The notes: generated by a model from the letters alone, not told the origin. 64,000 bases of DNA from IMGVR_UViG_3300045256_000050:124001-188000; one strand, 5' to 3'; shown: positions 40,656 through 60,368, counted from the stretch's first letter. Numbers and translations: made by a program.

Positions 40656-40663
40656 CCTTCTCC

Positions 40664-42469: not shown

Positions 42470-42479
42470 TGATTATCTT

Positions 42480-43487
42480 TCACGCTTGGACTTTCACGCC
42501 GAAGGTGGCTGCGTTAATTGTGGCGTCCGTCCAGGCCACGTTTCCATCCGGGTTTCTTTCGAACATGCCGAAGAATGTTTGGTAAGTATCCGACACATAC
42601 TTGTCGCCGCTCTCGCTCAGGTTCGAGTTCGACATCGCTTGCAATCGCAAGCTCCTGACGTAAGCATCCGTTTTCCGGGCGTAGCCGTTAACCATGACCC
42701 CCTTCATGTTCCCGGATTCGCTGAGGGTAGTGAAGAAGTAGCGGTCGGCGTTGCTGACCGTCGATGTTTCCACATAGTCCGTGTCGTCGTTCGGCGTGGC
42801 TTCATCAACACACTGGTAGTTCGACCCGGTGCTGGCGGTCCAGCTATTCACGTCGCCGTTGGCCCGAGGCAACAACTGGTAGACCTTCACGTCGCCCATG
42901 AAGTCGTTGTTCACTGATCCGGTCGTGTCCCACATCACCAGATCGTCGAGGAAGTTGTTGTTCGCCGACGATAGGAACCGGAGTTGAGAAACCCCGGTGC
43001 CGGTGCCCTGGGCCTGTGTGTTCTGTCCGGTCAGGTTTAAGACTGTCTGGCCGTCCAGTTTCACAACAACCGACCCGCTGGTGCCCGAGGCGATGACGAC
43101 TTTGCATTCGATGTAGTGCCAAGTGTCCAACGCAAAAGCCACGTCGCTGCCAAGCTGCGTACCAGCACGGGTCACATACAGAACGCCCGACGCTTTGGTT
43201 GAGATCGTGATCTGGTTGCCGGTGTTCGACGAGTTGAACCACCAAACGTGGTCGTTTTGCAAGCCGCTCGATCCGCAGTACCAACCCGCCCCGAACCCGA
43301 CGGTCGTGGCCTCGTTCCAAAGCCCCATCGGGGACTTCCACTCGCAGTCCGTCTGGAACTTGATGGAACTCCCCGTCCCGGAGATACGAGGCGTCTGGCC
43401 GGTGATCGGGCTGAGTAGATAAACACCCTTCTGGGCTGCGTTGGCAACGGACGTGTAGTCCATGCCGTCCATAAACAATAGTGCCAT
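42480..43487 (-). CDS. LamG/ConA-like virion protein, array copy 3
   Basis: MALLFMDGMD...same conserved motifs. Confidence 0.7.
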   Translation of the reverse strand: MALLFMDGMDYTSVANAAQKGVYLLSPITGQTPRISGTGSSIKFQTDCEWKSPMGLWNEATTVGFGAGWYCGSSGLQNDHVWWFNSSNTGNQITISTKASGVLYVTRAGTQLGSDVAFALDTWHYIECKVVIASGTSGSVVVKLDGQTVLNLTGQNTQAQGTGTGVSQLRFLSSANNNFLDDLVMWDTTGSVNNDFMGDVKVYQLLPRANGDVNSWTASTGSNYQCVDEATPNDDTDYVETSTVSNADRYFFTTLSESGNMKGVMVNGYARKTDAYVRSLRLQAMSNSNLSESGDKYVSDTYQTFFGMFERNPDGNVAWTDATINAATFGVKVQA

Positions 43488-44485
43488 TATGACTCCAGTT
43501 TGATGCCAAAGTAAGCCGCATTGACCCCGCTCTGCGTCCACGCCACCGACGTACTCGGGTCCGTCTCGAACACGGTCAGGTGCGGGTAGTAGCTGTTAAA
43601 GGTCTGCTGGGCCGACCCGGTGGCCTCGACCCCACCGGATTTCGCAATCGCCCGGATTGATTTCAGTTCAACGTCAGTCTGGATTGCGACCAGATATACC
43701 GCTACGCCTTTGATGTCGGCGAAGTTGCTGACCGTCTGGAAGGTGTAGTTATCCTTGTTACCCACGCCTGTTGTCGAAACGTAGTCGGTTGTGTTGTAAG
43801 GCGGCGTGTCGTCAACGCACTGGTAGTTCGACCCGGTGCTGGCGGTCCAGTTGTTCGTGTCGCCGTTGGCCGTCGGCAGGAAGTATCTTACTTTACACGG
43901 GCCGAGGAAGTCGTTGTTCGTACTCCCGTTGCCGTCACAGATGTAGATGTCGTCGAAGAGGTTGCCGCTGAACCTCACGTCGTCGTAACCGAGGAACCGG
44001 ACCGAACCGACCCCGGTCGTGCCGGTGTTCACGTTCCCCGTGTCGATCACCTGTGACCCGTCGATGCGCACCACTACCCGCCCCACGGTTGCACTGACGA
44101 TGAACTTGACTTCGAAATAGTGCCAACCTTCATTGATTAAGGTTGGTGCGGGGCTGTAGGTCGTGGAACCGACGGTGAATCTCGGACTGGTGTCGAACCA
44201 CTGGAACTGGAACAAAACACCCGCCGTCTGGCTCAACAGCCGAAGGAAAGTCCGGTTGTCCCGCTGGATGATCGTGGGGTACATGGCGAACCCAACGATG
44301 AGCGTGGTCGGGGTGTTGTCCAGAGGGTAGGCGATGTACCGGCCGAATGGGATGCGGATCGACGACCCCACGCTGAATCGGCCCGTTTGCGCAACGGTGA
44401 CGCCGCCGTTGGAAACCTGCCAAGTCGATTTCATGTCGGCGTTCGTGGTGTAAGTGTCGAATCCGTCTGCGAGCAGTAGTGTCAT
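43487..44485 (-). CDS. LamG/ConA-like virion protein, array copy 2
   Basis: MTLLLADGFD...same motifs; TAATG coupling. Confidence 0.7.
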   Translation of the reverse strand: MTLLLADGFDTYTTNADMKSTWQVSNGGVTVAQTGRFSVGSSIRIPFGRYIAYPLDNTPTTLIVGFAMYPTIIQRDNRTFLRLLSQTAGVLFQFQWFDTSPRFTVGSTTYSPAPTLINEGWHYFEVKFIVSATVGRVVVRIDGSQVIDTGNVNTGTTGVGSVRFLGYDDVRFSGNLFDDIYICDGNGSTNNDFLGPCKVRYFLPTANGDTNNWTASTGSNYQCVDDTPPYNTTDYVSTTGVGNKDNYTFQTVSNFADIKGVAVYLVAIQTDVELKSIRAIAKSGGVEATGSAQQTFNSYYPHLTVFETDPSTSVAWTQSGVNAAYFGIKLES

Positions 44486-45516
44486 TATGCCTCCAGCTTC
44501 ACGCCGAACTCGGCTGCGTTGATGTTCGTGCCCGTCCAGTCGATGTTGCCGTTCGGGTCTTTATCAAAGGCGTAACCGAAATAGCCGTAGACCGACTGAG
44601 TGGGACTGAGGACGCCGCTCGTGGCGTCCGACGCACTGGAGTGGGCCTGGAGTCTGATCTGCCGGGTGCCCGCAATCGTCTTTTCCGCCGAACACTCGAC
44701 CCACACGGCTTTGCCCGAGAGGCCGGTCGGCACGTTGGTCACGTCGTACAGGTCAACGTGCCCTGCGGTGCTGTCTTCAACGTAGTCGGTGTTACCGTTG
44801 GCGACGGCCGTCTCGTCTACGCACTGGTAGTTGCTCGCCGCACCGACGGGCGTCCACTGGTTCGTCGAGCCGTTGCCGATGGGGTTGCTGGTCAGAACCT
44901 TGATCGAGCCGAGGAAGTCGTTGTTGAAGCTCCCGGTGTTGTCTGCGATGTACCAGTCGTCGAACCAGCCGGGGAAGTTGTCGGCTGCCAGGGCGACCTT
45001 CGTCACGTTCGCAGAAGCCGCTTGCTGCGTGTTCACGTTGGTCAGGTTCAACACGGTCTGGCCGTTGACCTTGACCAGCACCGAGCCGGTGCTGCTGTTA
45101 ATCACTACCTTTGCCTCAACCCAGAACCAAGTCCCGTTGTTCGGGACGCCGATGGTCCCGATGCTTCCGAGTAGGGTGCCACCCGCCCTAGAAGCGAAGA
45201 AGTGGCCCGATTGCGTCAACGAGATAGTGAGTTGCAGTGTCGTGGCGTTATAGAAGTAGAGCAGGAAGCCGCTGCCGACGTTCTGCGTGTTCTGGTCGTC
45301 GATCTTGTAGGCGAAGCCGGTAATAACCGTGGGGGAAGCCAGGATGTTGTCCGGTGTGGTCAGAATGCGGTCGTCGGCGAAATAGCAGGACGTGCCGGTG
45401 CCGAGCCTGCCGGTCTGTCCGAACTGGAAGTTCGTGCCGTTAATCGTGTAGCCACGGGCCGTGAAGTCCGAGCTTTGCGTGTAGTTTTCAAAACCTTCAA
45501 CCCAGACGAGTGCCAT
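44485..45516 (-). CDS. LamG/ConA-like virion protein, array copy 1
   Basis: MALVWVEGFE...same motifs; GGAGG RBS. Confidence 0.7.
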   Translation of the reverse strand: MALVWVEGFENYTQSSDFTARGYTINGTNFQFGQTGRLGTGTSCYFADDRILTTPDNILASPTVITGFAYKIDDQNTQNVGSGFLLYFYNATTLQLTISLTQSGHFFASRAGGTLLGSIGTIGVPNNGTWFWVEAKVVINSSTGSVLVKVNGQTVLNLTNVNTQQAASANVTKVALAADNFPGWFDDWYIADNTGSFNNDFLGSIKVLTSNPIGNGSTNQWTPVGAASNYQCVDETAVANGNTDYVEDSTAGHVDLYDVTNVPTGLSGKAVWVECSAEKTIAGTRQIRLQAHSSASDATSGVLSPTQSVYGYFGYAFDKDPNGNIDWTGTNINAAEFGVKLEA

Positions 45517-45555: not shown

Positions 45556-46026
45556 ATGAGTACATTTAGTGATTGGCTGGATAACGCAGAACTGAGCGAG
45601 GGGACGACCCGCTACTCGGTCGAAGTGAACTTCCGCACGAAGCTGCCGGAGGTACTGGACGGGTATGCGAAGATCGCCCTGGGCTTCGTTTCGGCTGCAC
45701 TGAAGCAAGCCGACTTCCACGTCAAGCAGGTCTTCGACGACGGCTTGATCCGTATCCTCGTCTCAACCCGGAATTGGGACGACGGTGAGTGGGTCGTGGT
45801 TCTGTCTTGGAACCCGCACCACAAGGCGTTCGTCATGACGCCTGGGCACTACAACACGCTCAACAAGTCCGTTTCCTTCAAGAAGCACGCCTCCACCCTG
45901 CTGAAGTCCGACAACCCTAGCGAGTTGACCAAGCTGGTGAAGGATGCGATGGACAAACTGAAGAACGTCCCAGACCGCCACGTCGAAAAGCTCAAAAAGG
46001 TGCCTCTCAAACGGGGACCGAAGTAA
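45556..46026 (+). CDS. Hypothetical protein, candidate capsid-targeted protein
   Basis: N-terminus MSTFSDWLDNAELSE; TATATA upstream. Confidence 0.65.
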   Translation: MSTFSDWLDNAELSEGTTRYSVEVNFRTKLPEVLDGYAKIALGFVSAALKQADFHVKQVFDDGLIRILVSTRNWDDGEWVVVLSWNPHHKAFVMTPGHYNTLNKSVSFKKHASTLLKSDNPSELTKLVKDAMDKLKNVPDRHVEKLKKVPLKRGPK

Positions 46027-46845: not shown

Positions 46846-48528
46846 CTACTTTCTGACCTTGATCGAATAGAGTTTCTTGCCCTGGAAGAACATGACTTGG
46901 GAGTCCCGAGCGGTCAAGATCATGTCGCCTTCCGTCACCGGATCGTCGATCTCTTTGACGCTCGGATGATCGACACGGAAAATCTCGACGTTTTCCTGCT
47001 CATTCATCAGCACGCCGATGCCCGTTGGAAGCCCTACGAAGTTCAGGGAGGGCACGGAAACGTCCGAGACGGTCCTGATCTCGTAGCTCCAGTCGGCAGC
47101 GAACCGCAGCGTGTGGCGAGCGTACTTGCCCGTCCGGTCCACGGTGATGATGCCCAACAGCCGGTTGTGGTAGCGGGCGTCCACCACCTGAAGCCCGTTA
47201 AGCTCCTTGATGGCGATCTGCCGGTTCTCCCGGCTGTTCGGGAAGATCGACGCAATCGTGGCGTCGAACAGGGTTTGGATCAAGCAGCCCTCGAAAACCT
47301 TCGTGGACTGTGGGATGTATGTCCCAACGACAGTGGTCCCGGCGAGAACTTTACTTCCCAGACCAGTGAAGGTAAGTTCCAGAACGTTCCCGCCGAGGAG
47401 GACGTACACCCGGTCGCCAGAGGTAAACACCTTCTCGGCGTTGCAGGTAATGGGAATCTTGTCGCCCGTCAGGATGTTCTGGATGTTCAGCGTGCCGTGA
47501 TCGGTCCACACGGCCAGCGGGGTAGCACCCAGGAATCCGATCTGGACGGGGTGTGCGAGTGCGACACGTCTGCCGTTCACATATGCGCATCCCTGGCACA
47601 GCACCACTTCCGTGCCCTGGCTGTAGCGGTAGCCGACGATCTCCTCGTCCAACTCCCGCAGCAGTTCGATGTCGAAGTTGTTGCTGCCCTTGATCGTCTT
47701 GACGGTCGTGATGACGGCGAGTTTGGCGACCAGATCGAACGGCGGCGGCACCCGCATCCCACGGTCCAGAACGGCCTCGTACCACTTCAGGTACACGTCT
47801 GGGATGACGGAGAGCGGCTGGCAGACGGCCTTCGGGTAGGTCACGTCGGGGTTGAGGACGGAGATGTTGGCCTTCATGCGGCCGTCCATCGCCGTGTTCT
47901 TGTCCGTGAACTTCGGGTGGTTCCCCTTGTAGGGGTGAATCCCGATGAACATCTGGAACGTGACGACGGCGAACGAGAACCAGTCCGTTCCTTCAGTGAA
48001 CTTGTTGTTACAGTGGCGGTCCCGGATGGACTCCATGATCGCCGTGGCCGGGTAGCTCGGCGTCTGGTACGAGTTCACGTCGATGAAGAACACGTTCTCA
48101 AGGGGAGCGTCCAGAAGGAAGTTCAACTCGTTCAGGTCTACGAGCAGAACCTTCTTCGAGTGGATGAAGCCGGTGGTCGCCTGCATCTGGCGGACCAGCT
48201 TCAGCACCATGTCCGGGGTGACGTTGTTCCGGGTGCGGAACGCCTTCGTGAACAACTGGCAGAGGGTGTAGGCGTCGGGCACGAGCTTCATCGTGTACCC
48301 GACATCGACGCCCTTCGTGTCCACGAGGATGTCTTCCGGCCGAATGATGTGCGGCTCGTCGAGGACGGCGAGTTCCTTGAACTTCTGCTCCGGGATCATC
48401 TTCCCCGGTTCGCAGACTTTGTAAACCACGCCGCCCTTCGAGTAAACCTCACCTTCCCCGCCTTTGGCGAGGAAGTTCCTCTTGTCGAGGTTCACTTCGA
48501 GACGCTTCCCCTTGAGAGTGAGCTTCAT
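46846..48528 (-). CDS. Ser/Thr protein kinase-like (TerY-P triad type) with C-terminal beta domain
   Basis: KGGEGEVY, VYK, HSKKVLLVDLNELN, FIDVNSYQ, DWFSFAV. Confidence 0.8.
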   Translation of the reverse strand: MKLTLKGKRLEVNLDKRNFLAKGGEGEVYSKGGVVYKVCEPGKMIPEQKFKELAVLDEPHIIRPEDILVDTKGVDVGYTMKLVPDAYTLCQLFTKAFRTRNNVTPDMVLKLVRQMQATTGFIHSKKVLLVDLNELNFLLDAPLENVFFIDVNSYQTPSYPATAIMESIRDRHCNNKFTEGTDWFSFAVVTFQMFIGIHPYKGNHPKFTDKNTAMDGRMKANISVLNPDVTYPKAVCQPLSVIPDVYLKWYEAVLDRGMRVPPPFDLVAKLAVITTVKTIKGSNNFDIELLRELDEEIVGYRYSQGTEVVLCQGCAYVNGRRVALAHPVQIGFLGATPLAVWTDHGTLNIQNILTGDKIPITCNAEKVFTSGDRVYVLLGGNVLELTFTGLGSKVLAGTTVVGTYIPQSTKVFEGCLIQTLFDATIASIFPNSRENRQIAIKELNGLQVVDARYHNRLLGIITVDRTGKYARHTLRFAADWSYEIRTVSDVSVPSLNFVGLPTGIGVLMNEQENVEIFRVDHPSVKEIDDPVTEGDMILTARDSQVMFFQGKKLYSIKVRK

Positions 48529-48540
48529 GTTGCCCTCGGG

Positions 48541-49026
48541 TTACTTGACTTCTTCCAGGGCCAGGATGCGGCTGCTGACCTGACGCCGCATCTTCCGGCT
48601 CATGGCTTCCACGTCCTTGTCCTTGAACTCGCCAGCCGTGGCGATCAGCTTGTCCAGGTCGGCTTCCAGCTTCTCCAGCATCCCGCCGACCGGACTCTCC
48701 GGGGGCGTGCCGGGGATGACCGTCGCCTGCTTGATGACCAGCTTCTTCTTCGGCTTTGGCCCCGGCTTCTTCTTGACCGGCTGAACCGTCCCCGTCGCCG
48801 CCGGGGTGCCGTGGGCGTGGGCCGGGCTGGCGAGCGGCTTGGCCTTCGCCTTCTTGTCCCGCCACGTCTTCCGGGCGTACTGGAAGAGTTGGTTGTTCGG
48901 CACGTCCATCCGGGTCGGGTGCTTCTCCTTGAACTGCCGCACCATCTCCTCGAAGGAGATGTTCTCGTTCTCCTCGAACATCTTGTGGATCAGAGCCGTC
49001 GCCGATTCTCGCTTCGTCGTGTCCAA
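48541..49026 (-). CDS. Basic hypothetical protein, possibly DNA-binding
   Basis: TTG start with GAGGG RBS; K/P-rich linker. Confidence 0.5.
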   Translation of the reverse strand: MDTTKRESATALIHKMFEENENISFEEMVRQFKEKHPTRMDVPNNQLFQYARKTWRDKKAKAKPLASPAHAHGTPAATGTVQPVKKKPGPKPKKKLVIKQATVIPGTPPESPVGGMLEKLEADLDKLIATAGEFKDKDVEAMSRKMRRQVSSRILALEEVK

Positions 49027-49036
49027 GATCGTGCCC

Positions 49037-49618
49037 TCAGTAGAGGTTGTTTGCCTGGACGTAGAGGTAAGTGTCGTGGAGGACAAGCTTGGCTGCCTCC
49101 GGGTCGTGTGCCTCGTACATCCGGCGGAAGTCAGAAGACGCCACTTGCAGGTTCGCACCGGCGAGGTACTTGTGGGGAGGGCGATGCCACCACTCGTTAC
49201 CACGGGTGTAACCGGCTCTGTCAAATACTACAAACGGCACCACGTCCAGTAAAGCAGGATAGCCAACCCACTTCTCGATTTTCAGGGCGTTGTCCATCCC
49301 GATCATCAGGTGGAATTGATACTGCGGATAAGCATCCCGCAGCAGTTCGTAGACCCCCATCGTCGGGAGTTGAAGCTGGTGCTTGATCTCGAAGTCGCTG
49401 GCTTTGGCCCACGGGCCGAGATGATCCACCATCAGTTCGCACATGCGAAGCCGATGGAACGGGTCAGACATGACCTTGCCGAACATGTGCTTGTAGCAGG
49501 GCATCACCCACACTTCGTCGAAGTGCGGGCGAGCCAGACACATGAGTTGCTGGTGTCCGATAGTCGGCGGGTCGGCTGCCGTGCCTAGAACTGCGACCGT
49601 CCTGGTCTTATCCGTCAT
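49037..49618 (-). CDS. nadD: Nicotinate-nucleotide adenylyltransferase
   Basis: DPPTIGH, DEVWVMP, LMIGMDN, VASSDFR. Confidence 0.85.
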   Translation of the reverse strand: MTDKTRTVAVLGTAADPPTIGHQQLMCLARPHFDEVWVMPCYKHMFGKVMSDPFHRLRMCELMVDHLGPWAKASDFEIKHQLQLPTMGVYELLRDAYPQYQFHLMIGMDNALKIEKWVGYPALLDVVPFVVFDRAGYTRGNEWWHRPPHKYLAGANLQVASSDFRRMYEAHDPEAAKLVLHDTYLYVQANNLY

Positions 49619-50414
49619 ATACCACTCCTATTCCGAAGTCATCTTCGTTGATGTAGTTGTATTCCTTGAACTTCTCGAACGCCTTGTGGCAACGCCTGCG
49701 AACGAACGTCCCAGCGTAACCCTTGAAAGCCATCACTTCGTTCAGGATGGAGTCGATCTCCACCGTGTTCTTCGTGATCGAGGTTGCGTTCTTCACCTTC
49801 TCGGTGAAGTGGCTCAGCCCGTCGGTGATGAGGGCCACCATGTCGTACTCGGCACGGGAGAAGGAGAACGCCCATCCGCTCAACCCGTACTCGATACCCA
49901 TCTCGTTGACACTCACGTCGTCGTCAATGGTCGTGACGACGAACTTCCCCCAGCCGAGCTTCTTCAGGTACTCCTCCCGGTCGCCGGGGGTGAAGCCGTA
50001 CTTCAAGTAGTACGGTCCGCCCGACGTGAACTCGACGGTCACGACCTGGAGTTTGCCGCTGCGGTGACGGGCGATGATGTTGCCGTCACCGTACAGGCAC
50101 CCGCCGAAGTTCGGATCGTTCTTCCTCATCGTCACCCACCCCAGAGTCGCCAGGAGCGAGTTCGGATCGAGTTCCAGACCGTGCCGGTGCAGGTCTGCGG
50201 CCTTGAACACCGCTTCACCGATTACACCCCCGGTCCGCTTCAGCGAGAGTTCGGCGGACTTCGCCAGCAACCGTGCGCCCCAATCCGTGTCCGGGGCCGA
50301 GGAACAGCCGTCGCAGATCACTGCGTAGGCCATGTCCTCAGTCAAACCCGACAGGGCGTAGTCCTGGCAGACTGCGTGCGTCGAACCGATGGTGTAGAAG
50401 GCGTCGGCGTTCAT
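49608..50414 (-). CDS. PP2C-family protein phosphatase
   Basis: GSTHAVCQDY, ICDGCSS, ITDGL, EDD. Confidence 0.8.
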   Translation of the reverse strand: MNADAFYTIGSTHAVCQDYALSGLTEDMAYAVICDGCSSAPDTDWGARLLAKSAELSLKRTGGVIGEAVFKAADLHRHGLELDPNSLLATLGWVTMRKNDPNFGGCLYGDGNIIARHRSGKLQVVTVEFTSGGPYYLKYGFTPGDREEYLKKLGWGKFVVTTIDDDVSVNEMGIEYGLSGWAFSFSRAEYDMVALITDGLSHFTEKVKNATSITKNTVEIDSILNEVMAFKGYAGTFVRRRCHKAFEKFKEYNYINEDDFGIGVVYDG

Positions 50415-52462
50415 TCAGGAACTCCAGAGAGCCACAGTGCGGGTAACACGTCAGACGGGGCACGCCAGTCGCCCCGTGGCGACAGGCCGACAGAACCGAC
50501 CTTCGGGCCGTCCGGGACACAGTTCCGCTTGAACTGGTTCTGAACGAACCGAGCCAGGAACGTCCGCAGGGCGTTCTTCTTCTCGCCCTCGGTGTAGTCT
50601 ATCGAGAACTTCGCCTTCGTCATGAGGTAGGCGATCTTCTCCGGCGGGAACTGGTTCCGCAGGAAGTTGAACAGGATGAAGTCGTGGAGTTCATACGCCC
50701 CCAGGACGCTCTCCGTCTTCTGGACGTGCTGGCCGTCCTTACCCACCGGCAGAAGTTCCGGGGATACAGGCGTTGCCACGATATCGTAGAGGACGCTGGC
50801 GAGCTTGTCCCGCTTCTCGTTACCGCCCTCTATCACGAAGTCGTCGATGCACTCGTCGGCGATGTACTTGACCACGAACTTCACGAGCGTCTTCGGCACG
50901 GTGCAGTTCGGGTTGTAGTTGCTCATGTGGTCGCCGTTGTAGGTACACCACCCCAGAGCCGCCTCCGAGAGATCACCCGTACCGACCACGAACCCCTTCG
51001 AGAAGAGTAACAGGGTCCGCAGACGGGCCTGGACGTTCTCGAACGTCAGGTCTTTCAGTTCTTCGGCGGGCGTCTCTTCGATGAGCTTGTTGATCCACTG
51101 GAACATCCCGTAGCCGTAAGGCTGTTCCTGACCGAATGGGGCATGACGGATCAGCGTCATCACGTCGCTGGTCAGGTGCGTGATCGGCATCGTGGACTGC
51201 GTGATGCCCAGCAGACGCATCAGTTCCAGGGCGTTCCCCTTCGTCCGCTCGGTCGTACCGAACCCCGGCATCGTTGCCCCGTGGATTCGGGTGTGCGGGA
51301 TGCCCAACTCGTCGCAGGCACGGACCACCGCCAGCAGGGCCAGCGTGGAGTCCAGGCCACCGGAGACGCCGATGACAAGCGGCGTACTCGGCTGGAGTTG
51401 TTCGATCCGCCTGCACAGACCGTGCGTCTGAATGCCGAAGATGTCCGAGCAGCGGGCCTGAAGCGTGGTCGGGTCACTCGGCACGAACGGGGCTGGGGCG
51501 ACGTACCGCAGCAGGTCCGTCCTGGGCGTCTCCGTGACCTGGAACCAGACCGGGATGTGGCGGTACTGGTGGTAGTCGTGCCGCCTCGACTGAGTGAAGG
51601 TGTTGGACTTCGCCCGGTCGTTGTTGAGCTTCATCAAGTCCACGTCGGCACGGGCGTAGGCGACTTCCTTGTACTTCAGCCCCTTGCCGACCCGCTTGGA
51701 CTCGTTGAGCAGGTTGCCGTTCTCGGCGATGATGCAGTGCCCGCCGAACACGACATCGCTGCTGCTTTCGGTGGAACCGGCCGAAGAGTAGGCGTAAGCC
51801 GCCACGCACCGGGCCGACTGGTTCTTCACCAAGTCCATCCGGTACTCGCTCTTGGCGACGAGTTCGTTGCTGGCCGAGAGGTTGACGAGAATTTGCGCCC
51901 CGTGGATGGCGGCGTGGGAGGAAGGCGGGATGGGCATCCACATGTCTTCGCAGATTTCGGCGAAGATGCGGACATCGTGGCCCGGCCGTCGGTCGTCGGC
52001 GAACATCAGGTCCGGGCCGAACGGGATGACCCCGCCTGCGAAGTAGACTTCGGTCGGACAGTTCGCATTCCAGGGCGAGAAGTGACGGCCCTCGTAGAAC
52101 TCGCCGTAGTTCGGCATGTACGTCTTCGGGACGATGCCGATGAGCTTCCGGTCTTGGAACGCCAGGGCACAGTTGTAAAGCGCACCTTCCACCCGGACCG
52201 GACAGCCCACGAAGACGAGGGGCGTGGTCGGCAGGTGCTTCCAGAGTTCGATGACGGCCTGTTCGGCGGCGTCGATCAGGTGCTTGTGGCCGAAGTAGTC
52301 GCCGCAGGTGTAGCCGGTGACGGCGAGTTCGGGAAAGACGATCAGGTCGGCGTCGGCTTGGGCCTGTGCCGCTTCGATGATGGATTTGGCGTTCATCGCC
52401 GGGTCGGTGACGTAGACCCTGGGCGAAACGGCCGCAATGCGGAAAAAGCCGAACTTGTCCAT
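50411..52462 (-). CDS. nadE: Glutamine-dependent NAD+ synthetase
   Basis: Nitrilase triad FPEL / PKTY / EICED plus SGGLDST, ENVQARLR, GTGDLSE. Confidence 0.95.
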   Translation of the reverse strand: MDKFGFFRIAAVSPRVYVTDPAMNAKSIIEAAQAQADADLIVFPELAVTGYTCGDYFGHKHLIDAAEQAVIELWKHLPTTPLVFVGCPVRVEGALYNCALAFQDRKLIGIVPKTYMPNYGEFYEGRHFSPWNANCPTEVYFAGGVIPFGPDLMFADDRRPGHDVRIFAEICEDMWMPIPPSSHAAIHGAQILVNLSASNELVAKSEYRMDLVKNQSARCVAAYAYSSAGSTESSSDVVFGGHCIIAENGNLLNESKRVGKGLKYKEVAYARADVDLMKLNNDRAKSNTFTQSRRHDYHQYRHIPVWFQVTETPRTDLLRYVAPAPFVPSDPTTLQARCSDIFGIQTHGLCRRIEQLQPSTPLVIGVSGGLDSTLALLAVVRACDELGIPHTRIHGATMPGFGTTERTKGNALELMRLLGITQSTMPITHLTSDVMTLIRHAPFGQEQPYGYGMFQWINKLIEETPAEELKDLTFENVQARLRTLLLFSKGFVVGTGDLSEAALGWCTYNGDHMSNYNPNCTVPKTLVKFVVKYIADECIDDFVIEGGNEKRDKLASVLYDIVATPVSPELLPVGKDGQHVQKTESVLGAYELHDFILFNFLRNQFPPEKIAYLMTKAKFSIDYTEGEKKNALRTFLARFVQNQFKRNCVPDGPKVGSVGLSPRGDWRAPSDVLPALWLSGVPE

Positions 52463-52508
52463 GATGTCCTCCTTGACACTAGGATACCGTTGGGAGCGTA
52501 GTTGTAAA

Positions 52509-53276
52509 TCAGGGCAGGGTCAAAATCTCCACGCCTTTCTCAGTAACGAGAACCGTGTGTTCGTACTGAGCGGATAGCTTACCGTCCGCCGTCCGAGCCG
52601 TCCAATTGTCGGCGTCGATCCGACAGTGCGGCGTACCGGCGTTAATCATCGGTTCGATGGTGAAGATCATACCCGGCTTCATGACCGGGCCGTGATTCTT
52701 CTTTGTCATGTAGTGATTGACTTCCGGGGCTTCGTGGAATTTCAACCCGACCCCGTGACCGGCGAAGTTGTACACGACGGAGTGGCCGTGAGTCAGTGCG
52801 TACTTGGTGATGGCGAAACCGATGTTGCCGAAGTAGTTACCCGGTCGGACTTCCTTAATGCCGACTTCCAGGCACTTCTTGGCGACTTCCATTACCTGAG
52901 CGGCGTGACGGCTGATCGGCCCGACGGCGAACATCGTGGACGTGTCGCCGAAGTAGCCGTCGAGGATCGTGGACACGTCCACGTTCACGATGTCACCTTC
53001 CTTCAGAATGGTTGTCTCTGAAGGAATGCCGTGGCAGATGACTTCGTTGATGGAGATGCAGCACTCCTTCGGGTAGCCACGGTAGTTGAGCGTGGCCGGA
53101 GTGCCGCCGTGATCCTGCGTGAACTGGATGACGAGTTGGTTAATCGCCTCCGTGCTGACGCCTGGAACAACGTGTGGCCGGATGAAATCGAGGGTTTGGG
53201 CCGTCAGCTTACATGCTTTTCGGATACCCTCGATCTGCTCCGGCGTTTTGATGATGATTTCTTCTGTTACGGTCAT
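52509..53276 (-). CDS. map: Methionine aminopeptidase type I
   Basis: CISINEVICHGIP, GDIVNVD, GYFGDTS, GHGVG, FTIEPMIN, SAQYEHT. Confidence 0.95.
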   Translation of the reverse strand: MTVTEEIIIKTPEQIEGIRKACKLTAQTLDFIRPHVVPGVSTEAINQLVIQFTQDHGGTPATLNYRGYPKECCISINEVICHGIPSETTILKEGDIVNVDVSTILDGYFGDTSTMFAVGPISRHAAQVMEVAKKCLEVGIKEVRPGNYFGNIGFAITKYALTHGHSVVYNFAGHGVGLKFHEAPEVNHYMTKKNHGPVMKPGMIFTIEPMINAGTPHCRIDADNWTARTADGKLSAQYEHTVLVTEKGVEILTLP

Positions 53277-53302
53277 TGTGCCTTCCCTGGCATAATGTAG
53301 TC

Positions 53303-54535
53303 TTACAAGTCTCTCTTTAGGCCAAGCCGCTTGGCGAATGTCCATTTCGCCACCTTGACGGCTTCGGGGTCGCCGGTCGCCTTCGTGTCCACGTCGCTGA
53401 TCTTCACCACCGGCATCCCGTTGACGGTCGCCAGCTTCATGACGATATTCATCGCCTTCGTGCCGCCGAAGGGAACGAAGTCGTTGGTGAAGTTCGTCCC
53501 GATCCCCGCTCCGACGGACTTGAAGCAGTTCTTGTAGAGATCGTACAGTTCGACCGCCTGCCCGGCGTTCAGGCCGTCGCTGAACGTGATCCCCTTCGTC
53601 TTGGGGTCGATCCCCAGCTTGCGGTAGTGGCTGAGAATCTTGTTGGCGAACGCCCGTGGGCAGCCGCTATCCTGCCGCACGGCGTCGTACTCATTTGCCA
53701 AGTGCTTGTCGAAGTCCAGCAGGAACACGTCCGTGCCGAACGTGTCAGGCAGGGCGAGCTTCGGCAAGCCGAGCGGCAGGTGCTTCAGCCACAGGTTGAG
53801 GGCGTGCTTGTTGGCGTGGCTCAGCCCTTCGAGGGCTGAGACGCCCATGTACCACTCGTGGGCGACGGTGCCCAGCGGGGCCATGTTGTACTTCTTGGCG
53901 AGGTAGACGTTGCTCGTGCCGAGGCAGTTGTTGTGCTTCTTGAACTCGGCGACCACGGCGTCCTGAATCTCGAAGCTCCGACGACGACGGGTGCCGAACT
54001 CAGAGAACTTGCACTCGCCCATGAACGTCGCCTTCGCCCCCTGGGCGGCGGCGTAACCGGCGACCAGCGATCCGGTCTTTCGCTTCAGGTTGGTCGTTTC
54101 GGCGGCGAAGGTCAACTCGCTGACGAGGGCGAGTAGTGGAACTTCCCACATGATCGCCGTCTTCCACGGGCCGGACACGGTGATCTTCAGGTTGCCCTGC
54201 GGGTCTTCACCAATGGCAACCTCTTCCGGGTTGTAGAAGAAGTTTTGGAGGAAGTCGATGTAGTTCCTCGGGAAGCCGAGGTTGGAGAGGTAGGCGAGTT
54301 CGTGGTCTTCCAACTTCAGCTTCGCCATGCTCTTGATGGCCTGCTGGAGCTTGTAAGGGATGACGCCGTGCTTGAAGCCGTCGGGCCGGGTGCTGCCCCG
54401 GTCGATGAACTTGTACGTCACCTGGGCGTCCGGGTATTCCTGAAAGACGGCGTTGCCCATCAGGAACTTGTACCAGTCGTTGTCCAAGATGGACGGGATG
54501 ATCTTGCATTCCGGGTCGATGTATTCCGTTGTCAT
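53303..54535 (-). CDS. pncB: Nicotinate phosphoribosyltransferase
   Basis: DNDWYK, EFGTRRR, GTSNV, GTVAHEW, RQDSG, FSDGL, GIGTN (PncB-type, not NAMPT-type). Confidence 0.9.
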   Translation of the reverse strand: MTTEYIDPECKIIPSILDNDWYKFLMGNAVFQEYPDAQVTYKFIDRGSTRPDGFKHGVIPYKLQQAIKSMAKLKLEDHELAYLSNLGFPRNYIDFLQNFFYNPEEVAIGEDPQGNLKITVSGPWKTAIMWEVPLLALVSELTFAAETTNLKRKTGSLVAGYAAAQGAKATFMGECKFSEFGTRRRRSFEIQDAVVAEFKKHNNCLGTSNVYLAKKYNMAPLGTVAHEWYMGVSALEGLSHANKHALNLWLKHLPLGLPKLALPDTFGTDVFLLDFDKHLANEYDAVRQDSGCPRAFANKILSHYRKLGIDPKTKGITFSDGLNAGQAVELYDLYKNCFKSVGAGIGTNFTNDFVPFGGTKAMNIVMKLATVNGMPVVKISDVDTKATGDPEAVKVAKWTFAKRLGLKRDL

Positions 54536-54632
54536 GGCTTTCTCCTCTTGTTATCCCATGATACCATCTTCGGGCAAAAAAGTAAGCCGTGGATTTCTCC
54601 ACGGCTTGCGCTTTCCTGGTTAAGACCCCGTG

Positions 54633-55427
54633 TTAGAACACGAGGCTCTGGCTCGGCCCCTTCGTGCCGAGCGCCTGGGACTGGCTGCTGATCGACTGGC
54701 TGACGAACTTCGCCAGCTTCGCCAGGGTCTTCTCGCTGGCGTCGTTCAGCGACAGGTAGGGGACTTCCGTCTCCTTCCCGCTGGCGTCCTTGACCTTGAC
54801 CGGGGTGAACCCGGCCTTCTGGGCGAACTCGGTCAGGTAGGCGTGCAGCCGGGGGTCGTTGACGTTCACCCCGATCAGGATCGCCACCAGGGACTCCATC
54901 GCCTCGGACTGCACCGCCTCCTTCAGCGCCTCGCCGACGTTGACCGCCGTGAGCAGCGAGGCGTTGTCGTCACCGTCGGTGATGACGAACACGATCCCGT
55001 TGCACAGGAAGTCGTTGGCCGACAGTTGCTTGGCGTAGGCGTTCGACGCCTTGATGGCGTTGTGGCTGCTGTCGAACAGGGCGGTCGTCGCCCCGTTGCC
55101 GGACTTCCCGTAGAAGCCCTGGTAGTCGGCCACGTTGCAGTTTTCGAGCAGCTTGAACCCGTGGAACTCGCTCATCTTCGTGCCGAACACGACGGTGCGG
55201 AGCATCAGGTTGTCGGCACGGGGGCTGTGGCGGCAGGACTTCACGATCTCCTGCGTGGCCTTCTCCATCTCCCCGGCGAACCCGGCCGTCGAACCGGACT
55301 CGTCGAACACGACGGTCGCCAGGGTGTACTCGGTCGCCTGGAGATCGCCGATCTTCGCAGCGGAGAATCCGTAGTGCGAGTTCGGGATGTTGAAGTTCTC
55401 CAGGTCGTCGTCGCCTACGAGGGGCAT
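54633..55427 (-). CDS. von Willebrand factor A protein, TerY-like
   Basis: MIDAS DESGS...TALFD...VITDGDDN. Confidence 0.8.
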   Translation of the reverse strand: MPLVGDDDLENFNIPNSHYGFSAAKIGDLQATEYTLATVVFDESGSTAGFAGEMEKATQEIVKSCRHSPRADNLMLRTVVFGTKMSEFHGFKLLENCNVADYQGFYGKSGNGATTALFDSSHNAIKASNAYAKQLSANDFLCNGIVFVITDGDDNASLLTAVNVGEALKEAVQSEAMESLVAILIGVNVNDPRLHAYLTEFAQKAGFTPVKVKDASGKETEVPYLSLNDASEKTLAKLAKFVSQSISSQSQALGTKGPSQSLVF

Positions 55428-55487: not shown

Positions 55488-56291
55488 TTACGCCAGGAAG
55501 TCCGTCGTGGTCGTGGTCTTCATGCCACGGGCCACCATCTCCTTGATGAAGTCGTCCTGGTTCTTCTCGAACCCAGGGACCGGCGACGTGGCGTCGGTCA
55601 GCAGGACGAGCTTCTTCACGAAGCTGTCGTCCGGGAAGTAGTTCACCATGTCCCGGCCGGTGTTGGCGAGGCAGTGGCTCCCGGCCTCCCCGGCGAGCAG
55701 CACGATGTCCGCCTCGTTCACGGTCTGGAGGAACCCGGTGTTGATCTGGGTGCCTGGGTCGCTCGGGTCCGGCACGTCGGCCTGGATCGCCGAGTAGTGT
55801 TCGGTCAGGATGTTGCTGCCCTTCGTCACGAAGTCGATGCTGCCGAACCGCTGGTTCGACCAGTCCATCAGCTTCTCGTACAGGGCGGGCCAGACCCCGT
55901 GCCCCCACGACCCGATCAGGCAGTGCGGGGGCCAGATGCACAGCGGGTAGCGGCTGTTCTTCTCCAGCCCCTCGACGTAGGCGAGCGCCCGCTTGTACAG
56001 GCCCGGCTTGCTGGTCGTCCACGTCCCGTTCCGCACGTCGGCAGCGGAGATGATCGTGAACGGGTTCGGGTGCTGCCCGGCCGAGTTCTTCCAGAAGACC
56101 GGGTGGGCGATGTGGATCGCTTGGTGGCTGTCGAGGGTGACGTGGATGTCGTGCAGCTTGTCCCGCAGCCGCCCGACCATCGTCGCCAGCCGGTTCATGT
56201 CCTTGTCGGACCCGTTGACGTAGAGTGCCCCCTTCGGGTCGCAGAAGTCGTTCTGCGGGTCGATCACGATCAGGTGTGCCTTGTTCGCCAT
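55488..56291 (-). CDS. pncA: Nicotinamidase (isochorismatase family)
   Basis: IDPQNDF, LDSH, WPPHC, TKG, GEAGSHC (D-K-C triad). Confidence 0.85.
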   Translation of the reverse strand: MANKAHLIVIDPQNDFCDPKGALYVNGSDKDMNRLATMVGRLRDKLHDIHVTLDSHQAIHIAHPVFWKNSAGQHPNPFTIISAADVRNGTWTTSKPGLYKRALAYVEGLEKNSRYPLCIWPPHCLIGSWGHGVWPALYEKLMDWSNQRFGSIDFVTKGSNILTEHYSAIQADVPDPSDPGTQINTGFLQTVNEADIVLLAGEAGSHCLANTGRDMVNYFPDDSFVKKLVLLTDATSPVPGFEKNQDDFIKEMVARGMKTTTTTDFLA

Positions 56292-56330: not shown

Positions 56331-56945
56331 TTACAGTGGTGCTTCGGGTTGTAAAGCAGCTTTTTCAGCCGCCTCACGCATCGCCAGGATCACGGGTTGC
56401 AGGTCCGCCCACACGTCGGCCTTCGCTGCGGGCGTCCTCAACAAATACGAGGGGTGGTAGGTGCAAATGACCCGCTTCCCCTTGTATTCGTGTTCACCAC
56501 GCAAACTACCCATCGACCGTTCCTCTGGCTTGCCCAGCAGGTAGATCGATGCCGTCTTGCCGAGACAGATGATCCACTTGGGGTCAACGACCTTGATCTG
56601 GAGATCGAGGAACGGGCGGCAGTTGGCCGCTTCTTCCTTCGTGGGCGTCCGGTTGAACGGAGGGCGGCACTTGAGGATGTTGCAGATGAAGATGTGTTCC
56701 CGCTTCCACCCTGCGGCGGCGATGAGCTTGTCGAGAAGCTGACCGGCTTTACCGACGAAAGGTCGCCCGGACCACGCCTCGTCCTCTCCCGGAGCTTCAC
56801 CGAGGATAAGGATGTCGGCGTTCGGGTGGCCCTCGCCGGGGACGTATTTGTACTCGAAGTGATTCCGGTACTCCGAAAGACCACTGCACTTGTTACATGC
56901 AGTGATCTTGGTGTTGATGACTTCTAACGCTTGCGACTTGAGCAT
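56331..56945 (-). CDS. udg: Uracil-DNA glycosylase family 4 (Fe-S type)
   Basis: CNKC, GEAPG, GRPFVGKAG, NILKCRPP, TYHPS. Confidence 0.9.
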   Translation of the reverse strand: MLKSQALEVINTKITACNKCSGLSEYRNHFEYKYVPGEGHPNADILILGEAPGEDEAWSGRPFVGKAGQLLDKLIAAAGWKREHIFICNILKCRPPFNRTPTKEEAANCRPFLDLQIKVVDPKWIICLGKTASIYLLGKPEERSMGSLRGEHEYKGKRVICTYHPSYLLRTPAAKADVWADLQPVILAMREAAEKAALQPEAPL

Positions 56946-57169: not shown

Positions 57170-57777
57170 TCACTCCTCCTGAGTAACTGGTTCCGACTCC
57201 GTTTTGAGAACCGGGGTGGCCCCCTCGAACATTACCTCTTCCCGGTTGGCGATCCGCTTGAGCGGCGGGATGTCCAACGCCACCACTTCCTGACGGGTGA
57301 TGGTGAGGTTCGGGTTCTTCCGGGCGGCGTGCATCGGCGGGAGCTTGTCCAACTCCTCGGTGCTGAACGGCCGCTCGGTCTTCCGTCGAGCGAGGTAGGT
57401 GCCCCGCTTGAAGAAGTCCGGGTAGTTGTTCCAGTTGACCCCGTGGGTCTGGAACATCATCTCCTGCATCATGCTGCTCGACTTGTTCTGCAACTCCTTG
57501 TGCGAGAACATCGACTGAGCCGCCATGCTGACGCTGTTCCGGGTGGCATCCATCTCCCGCCAGATCAGGTAGTTGGTCGCCTCCCAATCCGTCGGCACGT
57601 TGTACACCCGTGCGTCGAACAGGGGCATCCGGTCGGCCTTCTCTGGGAGGTAGTCCTTCAGGTTGCGGTTGAAAAACGCCGTGGTCATCGACGCCAACAC
57701 GGAAGTCATCTTCAACAACTTGGCGTCGAAGAAGTGTTCGGCGTCGATCTCGTCGGAGTACCACACGAGCGAGATTT
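57170..57777 (-). CDS. thg1: tRNA-His guanylyltransferase (Thg1-like), exon 2
   Basis: EISLVWY...KMTSVLAS...FDARV...YLIWREMDATRNS...FKRGT. Confidence 0.85.
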
Positions 57778-60136
57778 GTCGGGTAAGGGCGGAACATCGC
57801 TGCCCGCCCTCCCCTAAGAACCGTGCGTGTAAGTTTCCCTTCACACGGCTCAAGCAATCGGCTTAGCCACCAATCACGCCTTCTTCCCGTGCTTTGCCAG
57901 ATGGCAGTACAAGTGAAGAATGCGGAGGTTTGCGAGGCTGTCGTCCCCACCTTCCGAACGAGGCTTCACATGATGCTCATGTAACTCCTCGCCGTTGTTG
58001 AGGCTTTCGCCGCACTCAGGACACAAGAAGTTCTGTTGTTTGGCGACCTGACGCTTCTTGACAGTCAAGAGGTCGGACGCCTTTTCAGCGTCCCGCTCCT
58101 CCCAATACTGTTCAAGGGCGGGGTCGTCCCAGCAGGCGAACCGCTGGACAACAACGTGCCTCTTGATGAGAACCCAAGAAGGTTTCATCATGTAGCATTC
58201 GGACGTGCCGAACACCCATTTTGCACCCTTCCGGTAGTTCCCCCAATACCGCTTCAGCCACCCCCAACTCTTGTTGGCGTGACGCCGCCTGACCCAACGG
58301 TATTGCAGTTGGACCAGATAGTTGTCGAGGCCGTCAAAAGTTCGGGACGCCACCGAGCATCGGAAGTAGTTGCACCACCCACGGATGATCGGGTTCACTC
58401 TGGAGATCAGTTCTTCCAAAGGTCGCCCGTCATACTTGCGGAAGGTTTCCTTCAGCTTCTGCTTGATGGCCTTCACGGACTTCTTGCTGGGCTTGATGAA
58501 GAGCTTGTCGCCCTTCTTCGAGGTCAGCGTCTTGTACCTCCTGATGTTGAACCCAAGGAAGTCGAAACCTTCGTCCAGATGGGTGATACGGGTCTTTTCC
58601 TCAGAGAGTTCCAGACCACGTTCCTTCAACCAGACAACTAGCTTCGCCCGAATTGCTTCGGCTTCCTCCTTGGAGTGACACAACACCACGAAGTCGTCGG
58701 CGTACCTGACCAGCCCAACCGAGTTCGGAGCCAGTTCGTAGGTGGTCTTCCCGGTCCCCTTGCGGGTGTTTTTCCGGTACTTGACGCCCAGAACCTCCTC
58801 CATTCCGTGAAGAGCGATATTCGCCAACAAGGGACTAATCACTCCACCTTGCGGCGTACCCGCATGGGTGTCGTGGTAGCTGCCGTCGAATTCGACGTAA
58901 CCCGCCTTCAGCCATTGCCGGATCAATTCCCTTGCGGGAAAATTCCCGATCAACTGCATCAGCTTGTCGTGGTCGATGTTGTCGAAGGCTCCCTTGATGT
59001 CAGCGTCCAGCACCCACAATTTCCCACCTTGGCTGGTGAGTTTGAAGATGCGAGCGATGGCATCTTGGCAAGAGCGTTTCGGTCGGAAACCGTAGGACGA
59101 GTCCTCGAACTTCGCTTCCCAGAACGGTTCCAGTGCGTTAAGCACCATCGCCTGAACAGCACGGTTCGTGATGTCAGGGATGCCCAAAGGACGGAGCTTG
59201 CCGTTGGCTTTCGGTATATAAATCCGTCGTGCGGGACACTTCTTGGCGAGTTGGTATTCAGCCAACTCGTCCACGAGGCGTCCCCTTGCTTCGGGGGTTT
59301 TGACAACGATCTTGTCCACCCCCGGCGTCGTCCTCCCTTTGTTCAACTGCGTCACCCGTCGAACCGCCAGACAGCGGTTCTCGTAGCTCCGCAGCATAAC
59401 ATGCTGAAGACTTCGCACCCTCTTGAGGTTTCCCTCTTTGGCGGCACGGAAAATCTCTTGGCGAAGGCGGCGTACAAAAGTGACGACGTGGGACCAGTCA
59501 ATGCTGTTCCAGTCGCACTTTTGCTGGGAACTTACGCTTTGCTTTTCGTTCTCCATTTATCCCTCCTTCCCTTGAAATCTTCCGTCCGATCACCTGTCGG
59601 AATTCAGCACCCTTTCGGGTCGGGCATTACCCTATCCAGCCGGTTATGGATTCCCGTTGCCTTTCGGCTGCTGGCATTCGCTTGATCCGACATCCTTTAC
59701 CTGCTGGGGAGTCCAGTGTTGCTCACGCTTCACTTGCTTTCGGGCCGAAACCTTCAAGACCCCAACAGGCTTAACACGTTCCGCAGAACCGAAGGTACGA
59801 CTGCCGTAGGTAGTTCCTATACGCCGGGGATCGGAGGGGTGTTACTGGCCGTTGCCAGACGAAGACAGCCAGCCCTTCTGTGATCCCAGATAACCCGGCG
59901 TCAATTGCATTGCCGAGCCTACTCATCACGACGCTTCAAATGGAACTTCGCTTTCGCTTACCGTAGCAGTCTTTCCCCCGCCCCGGCTTTCTCCCGCAAT
60001 TTGGGTACTCGCCGTTGGGCATTCTTGCTCCCAGCTTCACACGCCTCCGTTGCCAGAGACGCATGTGGGATGGGGAAAAGGTTTAACACAAACCTTGGAG
60101 TTACCTCCACTTCAGTTCAGCGACCTCGTGTCGCAC
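57778..60136 (-). mobile_element. Group II intron (IIB, probably chloroplast-like class) inserted in thg1
   Basis: 5' end GTGCG at 60136; domain V GAGCCGTGTGAAGGGAAACTTACACGCACGGTTC at 57851-57818; 3' end ...TACCCGAC at 57778; excision restores the frame. Confidence 0.92.
57874..59556 (-). CDS. ltrA: Intron-encoded reverse transcriptase/maturase with HNH endonuclease domain
   Basis: TPGVD, LRPLGIP, PQGGVISPLLAN, RYADD, RGWCNYF, CPEC...HHVKPRSEGG...N...H..CH. Confidence 0.95.
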   Translation of the reverse strand: MENEKQSVSSQQKCDWNSIDWSHVVTFVRRLRQEIFRAAKEGNLKRVRSLQHVMLRSYENRCLAVRRVTQLNKGRTTPGVDKIVVKTPEARGRLVDELAEYQLAKKCPARRIYIPKANGKLRPLGIPDITNRAVQAMVLNALEPFWEAKFEDSSYGFRPKRSCQDAIARIFKLTSQGGKLWVLDADIKGAFDNIDHDKLMQLIGNFPARELIRQWLKAGYVEFDGSYHDTHAGTPQGGVISPLLANIALHGMEEVLGVKYRKNTRKGTGKTTYELAPNSVGLVRYADDFVVLCHSKEEAEAIRAKLVVWLKERGLELSEEKTRITHLDEGFDFLGFNIRRYKTLTSKKGDKLFIKPSKKSVKAIKQKLKETFRKYDGRPLEELISRVNPIIRGWCNYFRCSVASRTFDGLDNYLVQLQYRWVRRRHANKSWGWLKRYWGNYRKGAKWVFGTSECYMMKPSWVLIKRHVVVQRFACWDDPALEQYWEERDAEKASDLLTVKKRQVAKQQNFLCPECGESLNNGEELHEHHVKPRSEGGDDSLANLRILHLYCHLAKHGKKA

Positions 60137-60368
60137 CGTCGCTCTGGGTGTAACCGACCCGTGCGTTCGTCTCTTGGACGAGGAACTTGGTGGTCGCCAC
60201 CATGAGCCGGGACAGCCGCTCGTCGAACGGCCGCTTCAGACCCGCAGTGAAGGTGTGGAACGCCTTGCCGTCCATCCGGGCCACGATGGGAATGAGCGGA
60301 AGGAGTTGTTGGCCTGAGTATTGGAACTCGTAGCCCTTCATGCGGTCGCCGAGACTGTCCTTCTTCAT
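60137..60368 (-). CDS. thg1: Thg1-like protein, exon 1
   Basis: LGDRMKGYE...ARMDGKAFHTFT...RPFD...YTQSD. Confidence 0.88.

Follow-up and report, generated by a model that had tools for sequence, protein, structure and literature searches.

A putative kinase switch inside the NAD-salvage operon of a phage

Why would a phage carry a von Willebrand-type (vWA) protein, a PP2C phosphatase and a Ser/Thr kinase in the midst of enzymes for making NAD+? A preliminary description of this locus assigned the three proteins to a TerY-P-type triad carried by a phage, and proposed that the phage uses it for superinfection exclusion, for jamming a host triad or for regulating its NAD enzymes. To examine this, we analyzed a 64,000-nucleotide stretch of DNA (hereafter, the window; IMGVR_UViG_3300045256_000050:124001-188000), which belongs to an IMG/VR virus record of 245 kb that is about 48% complete and has T4-like neck and tail genes nearby. 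All three open reading frames exist on the minus strand in the order vWA-PP2C-kinase (Table 1), although in this phage they are not adjacent but are separated by NAD enzymes and other genes. In most relatives they are adjacent (for example in L003, L006 and L023, where L numbers denote individual loci used for comparison).

Table 1. Features of the NAD-salvage locus.
Coordinates	Strand	Product	Length (aa)	Remarks
55488..56291	-	X, PncA-like nicotinamidase	267	First gene of the cassette
54633..55427	-	vWA protein	264	Complete MIDAS; conserved Ser/Gln-rich C-terminal tail (FVSxSISxQSQxLGTGGxSxxLxF)
53303..54535	-	PncB, nicotinate phosphoribosyltransferase	410	Pfam NAPRTase and NAPRTase_N; NCBIfam TIGR01514, 384 bits (cut-off 269.55)
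52509..53345	-	M24 metallopeptidase, methionine-aminopeptidase-like	278	Pfam Peptidase_M24, E 1e-47; same position in L005, L007 and L101
50411..52462	-	NadE, glutamine-dependent NAD+ synthase	683	CN_hydrolase and NAD_synthase; NCBIfam NF002730, 747.7 bits (cut-off 473)
49608..50414	-	PP2C-type Ser/Thr phosphatase	268	PF13672 PP2C_2, E 1e-9, 38.6 bits (cut-off 24); start overlaps the NadE stop by 4 nt
49037..49618	-	NadD-like nicotinate-mononucleotide adenylyltransferase	193	Pfam CTP_transf_like, 31.6 bits (cut-off 21); NCBIfam TIGR00482, E 7e-23, below its cut-off
48541..49036	-	Small Lys-rich ORF		Fills the roughly 500-nt space between NadD and the kinase; start uncertain (ORF listed at 48541-49224); no Pfam hit or other detected family; may not belong to the system
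46846..48528	-	YegI-type Ser/Thr kinase (residues 1-260) fused to a predicted WD40-like beta-propeller (residues 276-560)	560	More than 1100 full-length homologs

We first asked whether the three proteins belong to the families that make up TerY-P-type triads. The vWA protein has no Pfam hit on its own, but of 42 homologs 15 hit VWA_2 and 7 hit VWA, and in an alignment of 42 sequences D42, S44, T115 and D151 are invariant and S46 is at least 90% conserved. Its AF2 model (pLDDT 73) matches integrin I-domains and other vWA domains at a Foldseek probability of 1.0. While a direct HHalign comparison to the single E. coli YegL sequence is weak (probability 11%, E 0.0027), the vWA protein shares with YegL both the MIDAS and a Ser-rich C-terminal motif, and JGI names its homologs 'YegL'. 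The phosphatase falls in the same Pfam family as E. coli PphC, and its metal-binding D18, D35-G, D110-G, D198-G and D258-D259 are invariant, also when aligned with PphC, though pairwise BLAST to PphC is not significant. For the kinase, Pkinase scores below the gathering threshold (27.6 against 31.7), but its profile matches E. coli YegI at 97.2% HHalign probability (E 3e-11, 296 columns), G23, G24, E52, D131, N136 and D150 are invariant, and K37 is at least 90% conserved. Together with a gene order equal to that of yegL-pphC-yegI, these observations support the family assignment made in the preliminary description. On the other hand, the AF2 model of the kinase (pLDDT 90) shows a kinase fold followed by an all-beta C-terminal region that matches the WD40 or propeller domains of LRRK2, PALB2 and Nup159, and not the Zn ribbon (classical) or OB fold (the defence version) of TerY-P kinases described in PMC11090510.

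Examination of related loci indicates that the unit comprises four genes and not three. A PncA-like nicotinamidase, which we term X, precedes the vWA gene, and the order X-vWA-PP2C-kinase holds in most of 80 bacterial MAG loci from GTDB, representing at least seven phyla, in about 72 of 80 IMG/VR viral contigs with GC ranging from 26 to 66%, and in the GenBank huge phages LR756511, LR745208 and LR756500. The grouping is not due to chance: the same genes recur in the same order in well over 100 independent loci. Some of the IMG/VR 'viral' contigs and some MAG contigs may, however, be misclassified. X is the best-conserved member of the cassette, with 50-70% identity to homologs across phyla and phages. 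NCBIfam identifies it as nicotinamidase/pyrazinamidase through an N-terminal match only, but a profile search of the PDB returned only nicotinamidases and other cysteine hydrolases, the best being yeast Pnc1 (E 9.6e-11). D11, D54, H56, H123, C124, K157 and C207 are invariant in 39 sequences, and the catalytic D11, K157 and C207 are again invariant in 143. The catalytic residues align to Pnc1 and M. tuberculosis PncA, and the WPPHC motif, which contributes a His to the metal site alongside D54 and H56, aligns with WPPHC of PncA and WPVHC of Pnc1. X has every catalytic and metal-binding residue of nicotinamidases, and the triad proteins likewise keep their catalytic or metal residues in phages and bacteria alike.

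The genomic context of the cassette links it to NAD salvage. In bacteria, the NAD regulator NrtR (NUDIX plus NrtR_WHD) adjoins it in 21 loci from five phyla, PncB adjoins it in 13 loci, an ADP-ribosylglycohydrolase lies next to it in L019, and a NadE-like ORF (23% identity) follows the kinase in L082. The order X-triad-PncB was found in 10 loci. Among sampled Armatimonadota, 18 of the 19 genomes with the kinase also have X. X without the triad lies directly beside PncB in most of the 19 such loci fetched (for example L089-L094, L096, L177 and L178), whereas with the triad the order is X-triad-PncB, as in L023. Importantly, the cassette is not phage-specific: in L023 it is native to a bacterial chromosome, as its flanks are cellular genes (MgtE, BlaR1-type peptidase, ECF sigma factor, histidine kinase) and its GC3 matches theirs. 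In viral contigs, PncB, NadE, NadD or NrtR occur within 10 kb in 32 of 80 loci, and their positions differ (before X, between vWA and PP2C, between PP2C and the kinase, or after the kinase), which argues for repeated selection for co-expression. However, many phage and bacterial loci carry X and the triad without PncB, NadD or NadE nearby, so the cassette does not need them in cis. In the phage analyzed here the cassette is interleaved with PncB, NadD and NadE, so that the locus encodes the full Preiss-Handler route from nicotinamide through nicotinate, NaMN and NaAD to NAD+.

An alternative explanation is that the triad is a stand-alone defence system, used by the phage for superinfection exclusion or to interfere with a host triad, with the NAD genes as unrelated neighbors. 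In favor of this view, the family resemblance to YegL-PphC-YegI is real, TerY-P-like modules are reported as stand-alone anti-phage systems (PMC11090510, citing Gao 2020), and the bacterial distribution is patchy (19 of 301 Armatimonadota genomes), as is typical of accessory systems. Conversely, the triad is almost never found without X directly upstream, NAD-salvage genes and NrtR adjoin it in five or more phyla and in phages at varying positions, the kinase lacks the Zn ribbon or OB domain of described TerY-P kinases, and no nuclease or other classical effector is conserved beside it. We therefore consider this explanation unlikely, though a defence role is not excluded. Of the three roles proposed in the preliminary description, only the regulation of NAD enzymes is favored by context, and nothing in our analysis speaks for superinfection exclusion or for jamming of a host triad.

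The explanation that we favor, with somewhat better than even confidence, is that the vWA, PP2C and kinase genes are the regulatory part of a four-gene cassette that belongs to NAD salvage. In this model, the kinase, whose propeller would act as a sensor or docking domain, and the PP2C form a reversible Ser/Thr phospho-switch, acting on the Ser-rich tail of the vWA protein and/or on the Thr next to the catalytic Lys of X. The switch would gate nicotinamidase activity, and so the flux of nicotinamide into NAD+, which in the phage would give regulated rebuilding of NAD+ during infection, for example when host defences cleave NAD+ to nicotinamide and ADP-ribose. This mechanism is inferred from gene neighborhood and conservation, without experimental or transcript data, and a prediction of the complex of X with vWA and the propeller gave no verdict. 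There are two candidate phospho-acceptors. The vWA tail motif is conserved across all loci and is echoed in E. coli YegL, while the residue before the catalytic Lys of X (position 156) is Thr in 54 of 54 bacterial cassettes and Thr or Ser in 62 of 69 viral ones, but Thr in only 1 of 19 triad-less X proteins. The latter correlation rests on only 3-4 independent gains or losses of the triad on the X tree, and one triad-less X keeps Thr. The fuller reading, in which phosphorylation of these sites gates nicotinamidase and gives TerY-P-like triads their first defined target, and in which huge phages carry the switch within a regulated four-enzyme NAD+ reconstitution pathway that works through nicotinate and counters NAD+-depleting immunity, is possible but remains doubtful.

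Two other roles for the cassette can be considered. In the first, for which the context evidence is the same, X is the effector of an immune-type switch, in which a trigger causes the kinase switch to turn on the nicotinamidase, destroying free nicotinamide and denying it to the NAD+ rebuilding of an invading or competing phage. NARP1 and NARP2 both consume nicotinamide (10.1101/2024.02.11.579819, PMC13464706), whereas the owner's route through nicotinate, by way of PncB, NadD and NadE, is insensitive to its loss. However, this is purely inferential, ordinary pncA-pncB operons without any switch do the same chemistry, and the locus shows no sign of a sensor for infection, making this role improbable. 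In the second, the triad serves to mature or metal-load X, a vWA/MIDAS co-chaperone role like that of MoxR-vWA systems and not a role in signalling. X and PP2C are both metalloenzymes, the vWA keeps a perfect MIDAS, and vWA co-chaperones are known in jumbo phages (PMC7824862). Yet no MoxR or other ATPase partner is conserved in the neighborhood, closely related X proteins function in operons without the triad, and an active kinase and phosphatase pair points to reversible phosphorylation, so we regard this as the least likely of the explanations considered.

TerY-P-like triads are widespread, but no target or output has been defined for them. Here, a large sub-family of hundreds to thousands of homologs is tied to one enzyme with a simple assay, making the triad's mode of action directly testable, and its occurrence in both bacterial chromosomes and huge phages allows the two settings to be compared. 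Relative to the TerY-P triad and the E. coli yegL-pphC-yegI locus, the cassette has the same three components in the same order on one strand, but its kinase ends in a predicted beta-propeller, where TerY-P and CoCoNuT kinases end in a Zn ribbon, the Gao 2020 defence modules in an OB fold, and YegI shows a weak HhH-like region; it also has a nicotinamidase as a fourth gene. An operon of Deinococcus radiodurans, DRA0331-0334 (bioRxiv 10.64898/2026.01.23.701218), similarly combines a vWA protein, a Ser/Thr kinase and a PP2C as one signalling module, but has an FHA protein and no nicotinamidase, and is linked to DNA-damage signalling. Bacterial NrtR-controlled pncA-pncB salvage operons share the proximity of X to PncB, with NrtR adjacent in many loci, but here three signalling genes are inserted between or beside pncA and pncB, and X, at about 265 aa, has a longer segment between the metal-binding His and the WPxHC motif than the solved nicotinamidases. 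Jumbo and huge phages that cluster pncB, nadD and nadE to make NAD+ have been reported ('NAD-jumbo phages', PMC11662467), without mention of a nicotinamidase or of any kinase, phosphatase or vWA component; the cassette described here adds the pncA step and a regulatory layer to such clusters. Finally, the likely purpose is shared with the phage NAD+ reconstitution pathways, the rebuilding of NAD+ during infection from breakdown products or precursors, but the enzymes differ. NARP1 uses Adps and Namat, NARP2 uses Nampt and Nmnat, and NARP3 uses PnuC and a NadR-like enzyme, whereas the phosphoribosyltransferase of this locus scores as nicotinate-specific, and the set of PncA, PncB, NadD and NadE, with its attached putative phospho-switch, points to a fourth enzymatic route, in four steps through nicotinate, by which phages could rebuild NAD+ against NAD+-depleting defences.

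The window is part of a 244,986-bp IMG/VR virus record that CheckV rates about 48% complete, so the genome is probably near 500 kb. Related contigs carry T4-like gp13, gp15 and sheath genes close to the locus, and the genome from which the window is taken has homologs of them. A second IMG/VR record, IMGVR_UViG_3300045107_000036 (64,807 bp), carries the window's locus with 100% identity over the kinase and the same full gene order, and the same phage is therefore recorded twice. The coordinates of the features in and around the locus are collected below.

Coordinates of the features discussed in the text, in the window and in other loci
Sequence	Coordinates	Strand	Feature
Window	57194-60368	minus	Thg1-like (tRNA-His guanylyltransferase family) gene split by a group II intron of about 2.36 kb
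Window	60368-60138	minus	Exon 1 of the Thg1-like gene
Window	60019-60097	minus	Rfam hit, intron D1-D4
Window	57874-59556	minus	Intron ORF (RT plus HNH)
Window	57778-57853	minus	Rfam hit, intron domains V/VI
Window	57778-57194	minus	Exon 2 of the Thg1-like gene
Window	56331-56945	minus	UDG
Window	55488-56291	minus	PncA-like hydrolase (X)
Window	about 55824-55826		Residue 156 of X
Window	54633-55427	minus	vWA
Window	53303-54535	minus	PncB
Window	52509-53345	minus	M24 (methionine-aminopeptidase-like) peptidase
Window	50411-52462	minus	NadE
Window	49608-50414	minus	PP2C
Window	49037-49618	minus	NadD
Window	about 48541-49036	minus	Small Lys-rich ORF
Window	46846-48528	minus	Kinase
Window	45556-46023	plus	Protein of about 158 aa with no known family
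Window	39633-45516	minus	Large ORFs downstream of the kinase
L005	5891-6427		M24 peptidase
L007	5836-6630		M24 peptidase
L019	11713-13935		Protein of about 740 aa with an N-terminal SAM-methyltransferase domain
L012	8843-11041		Protein of about 740 aa with an N-terminal SAM-methyltransferase domain

The genes from UDG to the kinase form a tight row, and the three ORFs that the preliminary description had assigned to a vWA protein, a PP2C phosphatase and a Ser/Thr kinase are exact. The vWA protein has no Pfam hit itself, though its homologs hit VWA_2, VWA or VWA_CoxE. While sequence and profile searches of this protein against PDB chains found nothing useful, a fold search with its AF2 model matched integrin I-domains at probability 1.0, and the MIDAS residues are invariant or nearly so. 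The PP2C passes the PF13672 threshold and keeps all metal-binding aspartates. The kinase keeps the Gly-loop, Lys, Glu, catalytic Asp, Asn and DFG-equivalent Asp, and is predicted (pLDDT 90) to fold into a kinase domain (1-260) and an all-beta domain (276-560). The latter matches WD40 and propeller domains, and the whole protein resembles the LRRK2 kinase-WD40 arrangement.

The small Lys-rich ORF has no detectable family and fills the roughly 500-nt space between NadD and the kinase, whereas in the related loci L005 and L007 NadD abuts the kinase directly. The M24 peptidase sits between PncB and NadE in several related phages (L005, L007 and also L101), and its role in an NAD cluster is unexplained. 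The protein of about 158 aa lies convergent to the kinase and is conserved near the kinase in L005, L006 and L007 at 44-68% identity. The large ORFs downstream of the kinase that were scanned (343, 332, 353 and 601 aa) have no Pfam hit, and none of the downstream ORFs used as BLAST queries has a homolog in the related loci examined. The Thg1-like gene is uninterrupted in L007.

To determine whether the three signalling genes form a unit, we searched for homologous loci. Megablast of the locus against GenBank phages found nothing, while tblastn found homologs of the three proteins only in three uncultured huge phages of 462-595 kb, and BLAST of all ORFs showed that X is present in all of them too. 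In one of these, LR756500, and in a 304-kb ENA contig, the four genes are contiguous in the order X-vWA-PP2C-kinase, whereas a 652-kb contig and a 193-kb contig repeat the window's interleaving exactly. More than 1100 kinase homologs and about 2200 vWA homologs exist in metagenomes. A scan of GTDB species genomes found 177 loci, and most of the 80 kept show X-vWA-PP2C-kinase in that order; a scan of IMG/VR found 122 viral contigs, of which about 72 of the 80 kept show the same order, at GC contents from 26 to 66%. X is the most conserved member (50-70% identity), followed by the vWA at 40-58%, the kinase at 33-53% and the PP2C at 24-43%. These observations indicate that the unit is four genes.

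The cassette is cellular as well as viral. One locus, L023, lies in a 6.18-Mb Capsulimonadaceae chromosome, flanked by a BlaR1-type peptidase, an esterase and MgtE on one side, and by PncB, a flavin reductase, an ECF sigma factor and a histidine kinase on the other, with the same GC3 throughout. We considered the possibility that the MAG loci on Mb-size chromosomes were huge prophages, but rejected it: of five such genomes, one has a single sheath hit about 3 Mb away, and L019, L064 and L066 have cellular flanks, as does L023. Only L008 (CALFYV010000090.1), a 546-kb huge-phage contig binned into a Bacteriovoracaceae MAG, shares other genes with the window's phage. Cassette-bearing contigs also sit in Micrarchaeota, Thermoplasmatales and Promethearchaeota MAGs (L040, L059 and L078), which look like binning errors or phage contigs. 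In 301 Armatimonadota species genomes the kinase occurs in 19, so the distribution is patchy. On a kinase tree, for which the root and the direction of transfer are open, the bacterial sequences group by phylum, while the window, L001, L005-L008 and proteins from very long metagenomic contigs form one group (SH-aLRT 94), with L002 and L003 falling outside it.

X is a nicotinamidase by every sequence criterion available. A profile search against PDB returns only nicotinamidases and other cysteine hydrolases, with Pnc1 best at E 9.6e-11, and D11, K157 and C207, as well as the metal ligands D54, H56 and H123 (the His of WPPHC), are invariant in 143 sequences. Neighbourhood clustering of the bacterial loci shows three recurring partners. 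NrtR, confirmed as NUDIX plus NrtR_WHD, lies beside the cassette in 21 loci from Acidobacteriota, Myxococcota, Thiotrichales, Armatimonadota and Desulfobacterales, in different positions and orientations, and PncB lies beside it in 13 loci. The third, the methyltransferase-domain protein of about 740 aa, lies directly downstream of the kinase, on the same strand, in 16 loci (Acidobacteriota, Myxococcota and one Armatimonadales locus, L011), and may be a fifth cassette member in those lineages. Single loci add an ADP-ribosylglycohydrolase (L019) and a NadE-like ORF (L082). In Armatimonadota, 18 of the 19 kinase-positive genomes have X, and X-type genes also occur in 18 genomes without the kinase. 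In most of those loci that we retrieved, X lies directly beside PncB; the triad is therefore an add-on within or beside a pncA-pncB operon. On the X tree, triad-less X proteins are nested at least three times among cassette X proteins.

In viral contigs, PncB, NadE, NadD or NrtR lie within 10 kb in 32 of 80 loci and occupy many alternative positions inside and around the cassette. Contigs classed as viral, several of them 450-550 kb, encode NrtR-like regulators next to the cassette, either upstream of X (for example L107, L109, L145 and L147) or downstream of the kinase (L119, L123, L136, L165, L166 and L170). Huge phages may therefore carry their own NAD-regulon repressor.

An intact nicotinamidase, an intact kinase and PP2C pair, and a vWA with an intact MIDAS are inherited together and embedded in NAD-salvage operons, and the window encodes all four Preiss-Handler steps. 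From this we infer that the kinase and PP2C probably set the phosphorylation state of the conserved vWA tail and/or of X, and that this gates nicotinamide deamidation and with it NAD+ resynthesis. A complex prediction for the vWA, the kinase propeller and X scored 0.02 and is not evidence either way. One lead concerns residue 156, directly before the catalytic Lys of X, which is Thr in 54 of 54 bacterial cassettes and Thr or Ser in 62 of 69 viral cassettes, but Thr in only 1 of 19 triad-less X proteins; Asp48 shows a similar but weaker pattern. However, an independent-contrast test of Thr156 against triad presence had only 3-4 contrasts and is underpowered. For the phage, the plausible benefit is regulated rebuilding of NAD+ from the nicotinamide released by NAD+-cleaving defences, which would be analogous to NARP1-3 but use different enzymes. 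Other readings, in which the triad is a stand-alone defence or exclusion system, X is a nicotinamide-destroying immune effector, or the signalling proteins act as a metal-loading chaperone, appear unlikely.

Both components of this arrangement have precedents. Preiss-Handler clusters (pncB, nadD, nadE) in jumbo phages have been published (PMC11662467), as have TerY-P triads, though in an incomplete check of the literature we found no paper that describes the nicotinamidase-triad cassette or its link to NrtR and PncB. TerY-P is described as a TerY-like vWA, a PP2C and a Ser/Thr kinase fused to a Zn ribbon, while in the stand-alone defence modules the fusion is to an OB fold instead (PMC11090510). 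PADLOC gave no TerY-P hit for the proteins studied here, but it gave none for the E. coli positive control either, and was not used as evidence. E. coli yegL-pphC-yegI has the same gene order. The kinase profile matches YegI at 97% probability, both phosphatases belong to PF13672, and the vWA shares the MIDAS and a Ser-rich C-terminal motif with YegL. The triad is therefore TerY-P-like in composition, and differs in the C-terminal domain of its kinase and in having a seemingly obligatory nicotinamidase partner.
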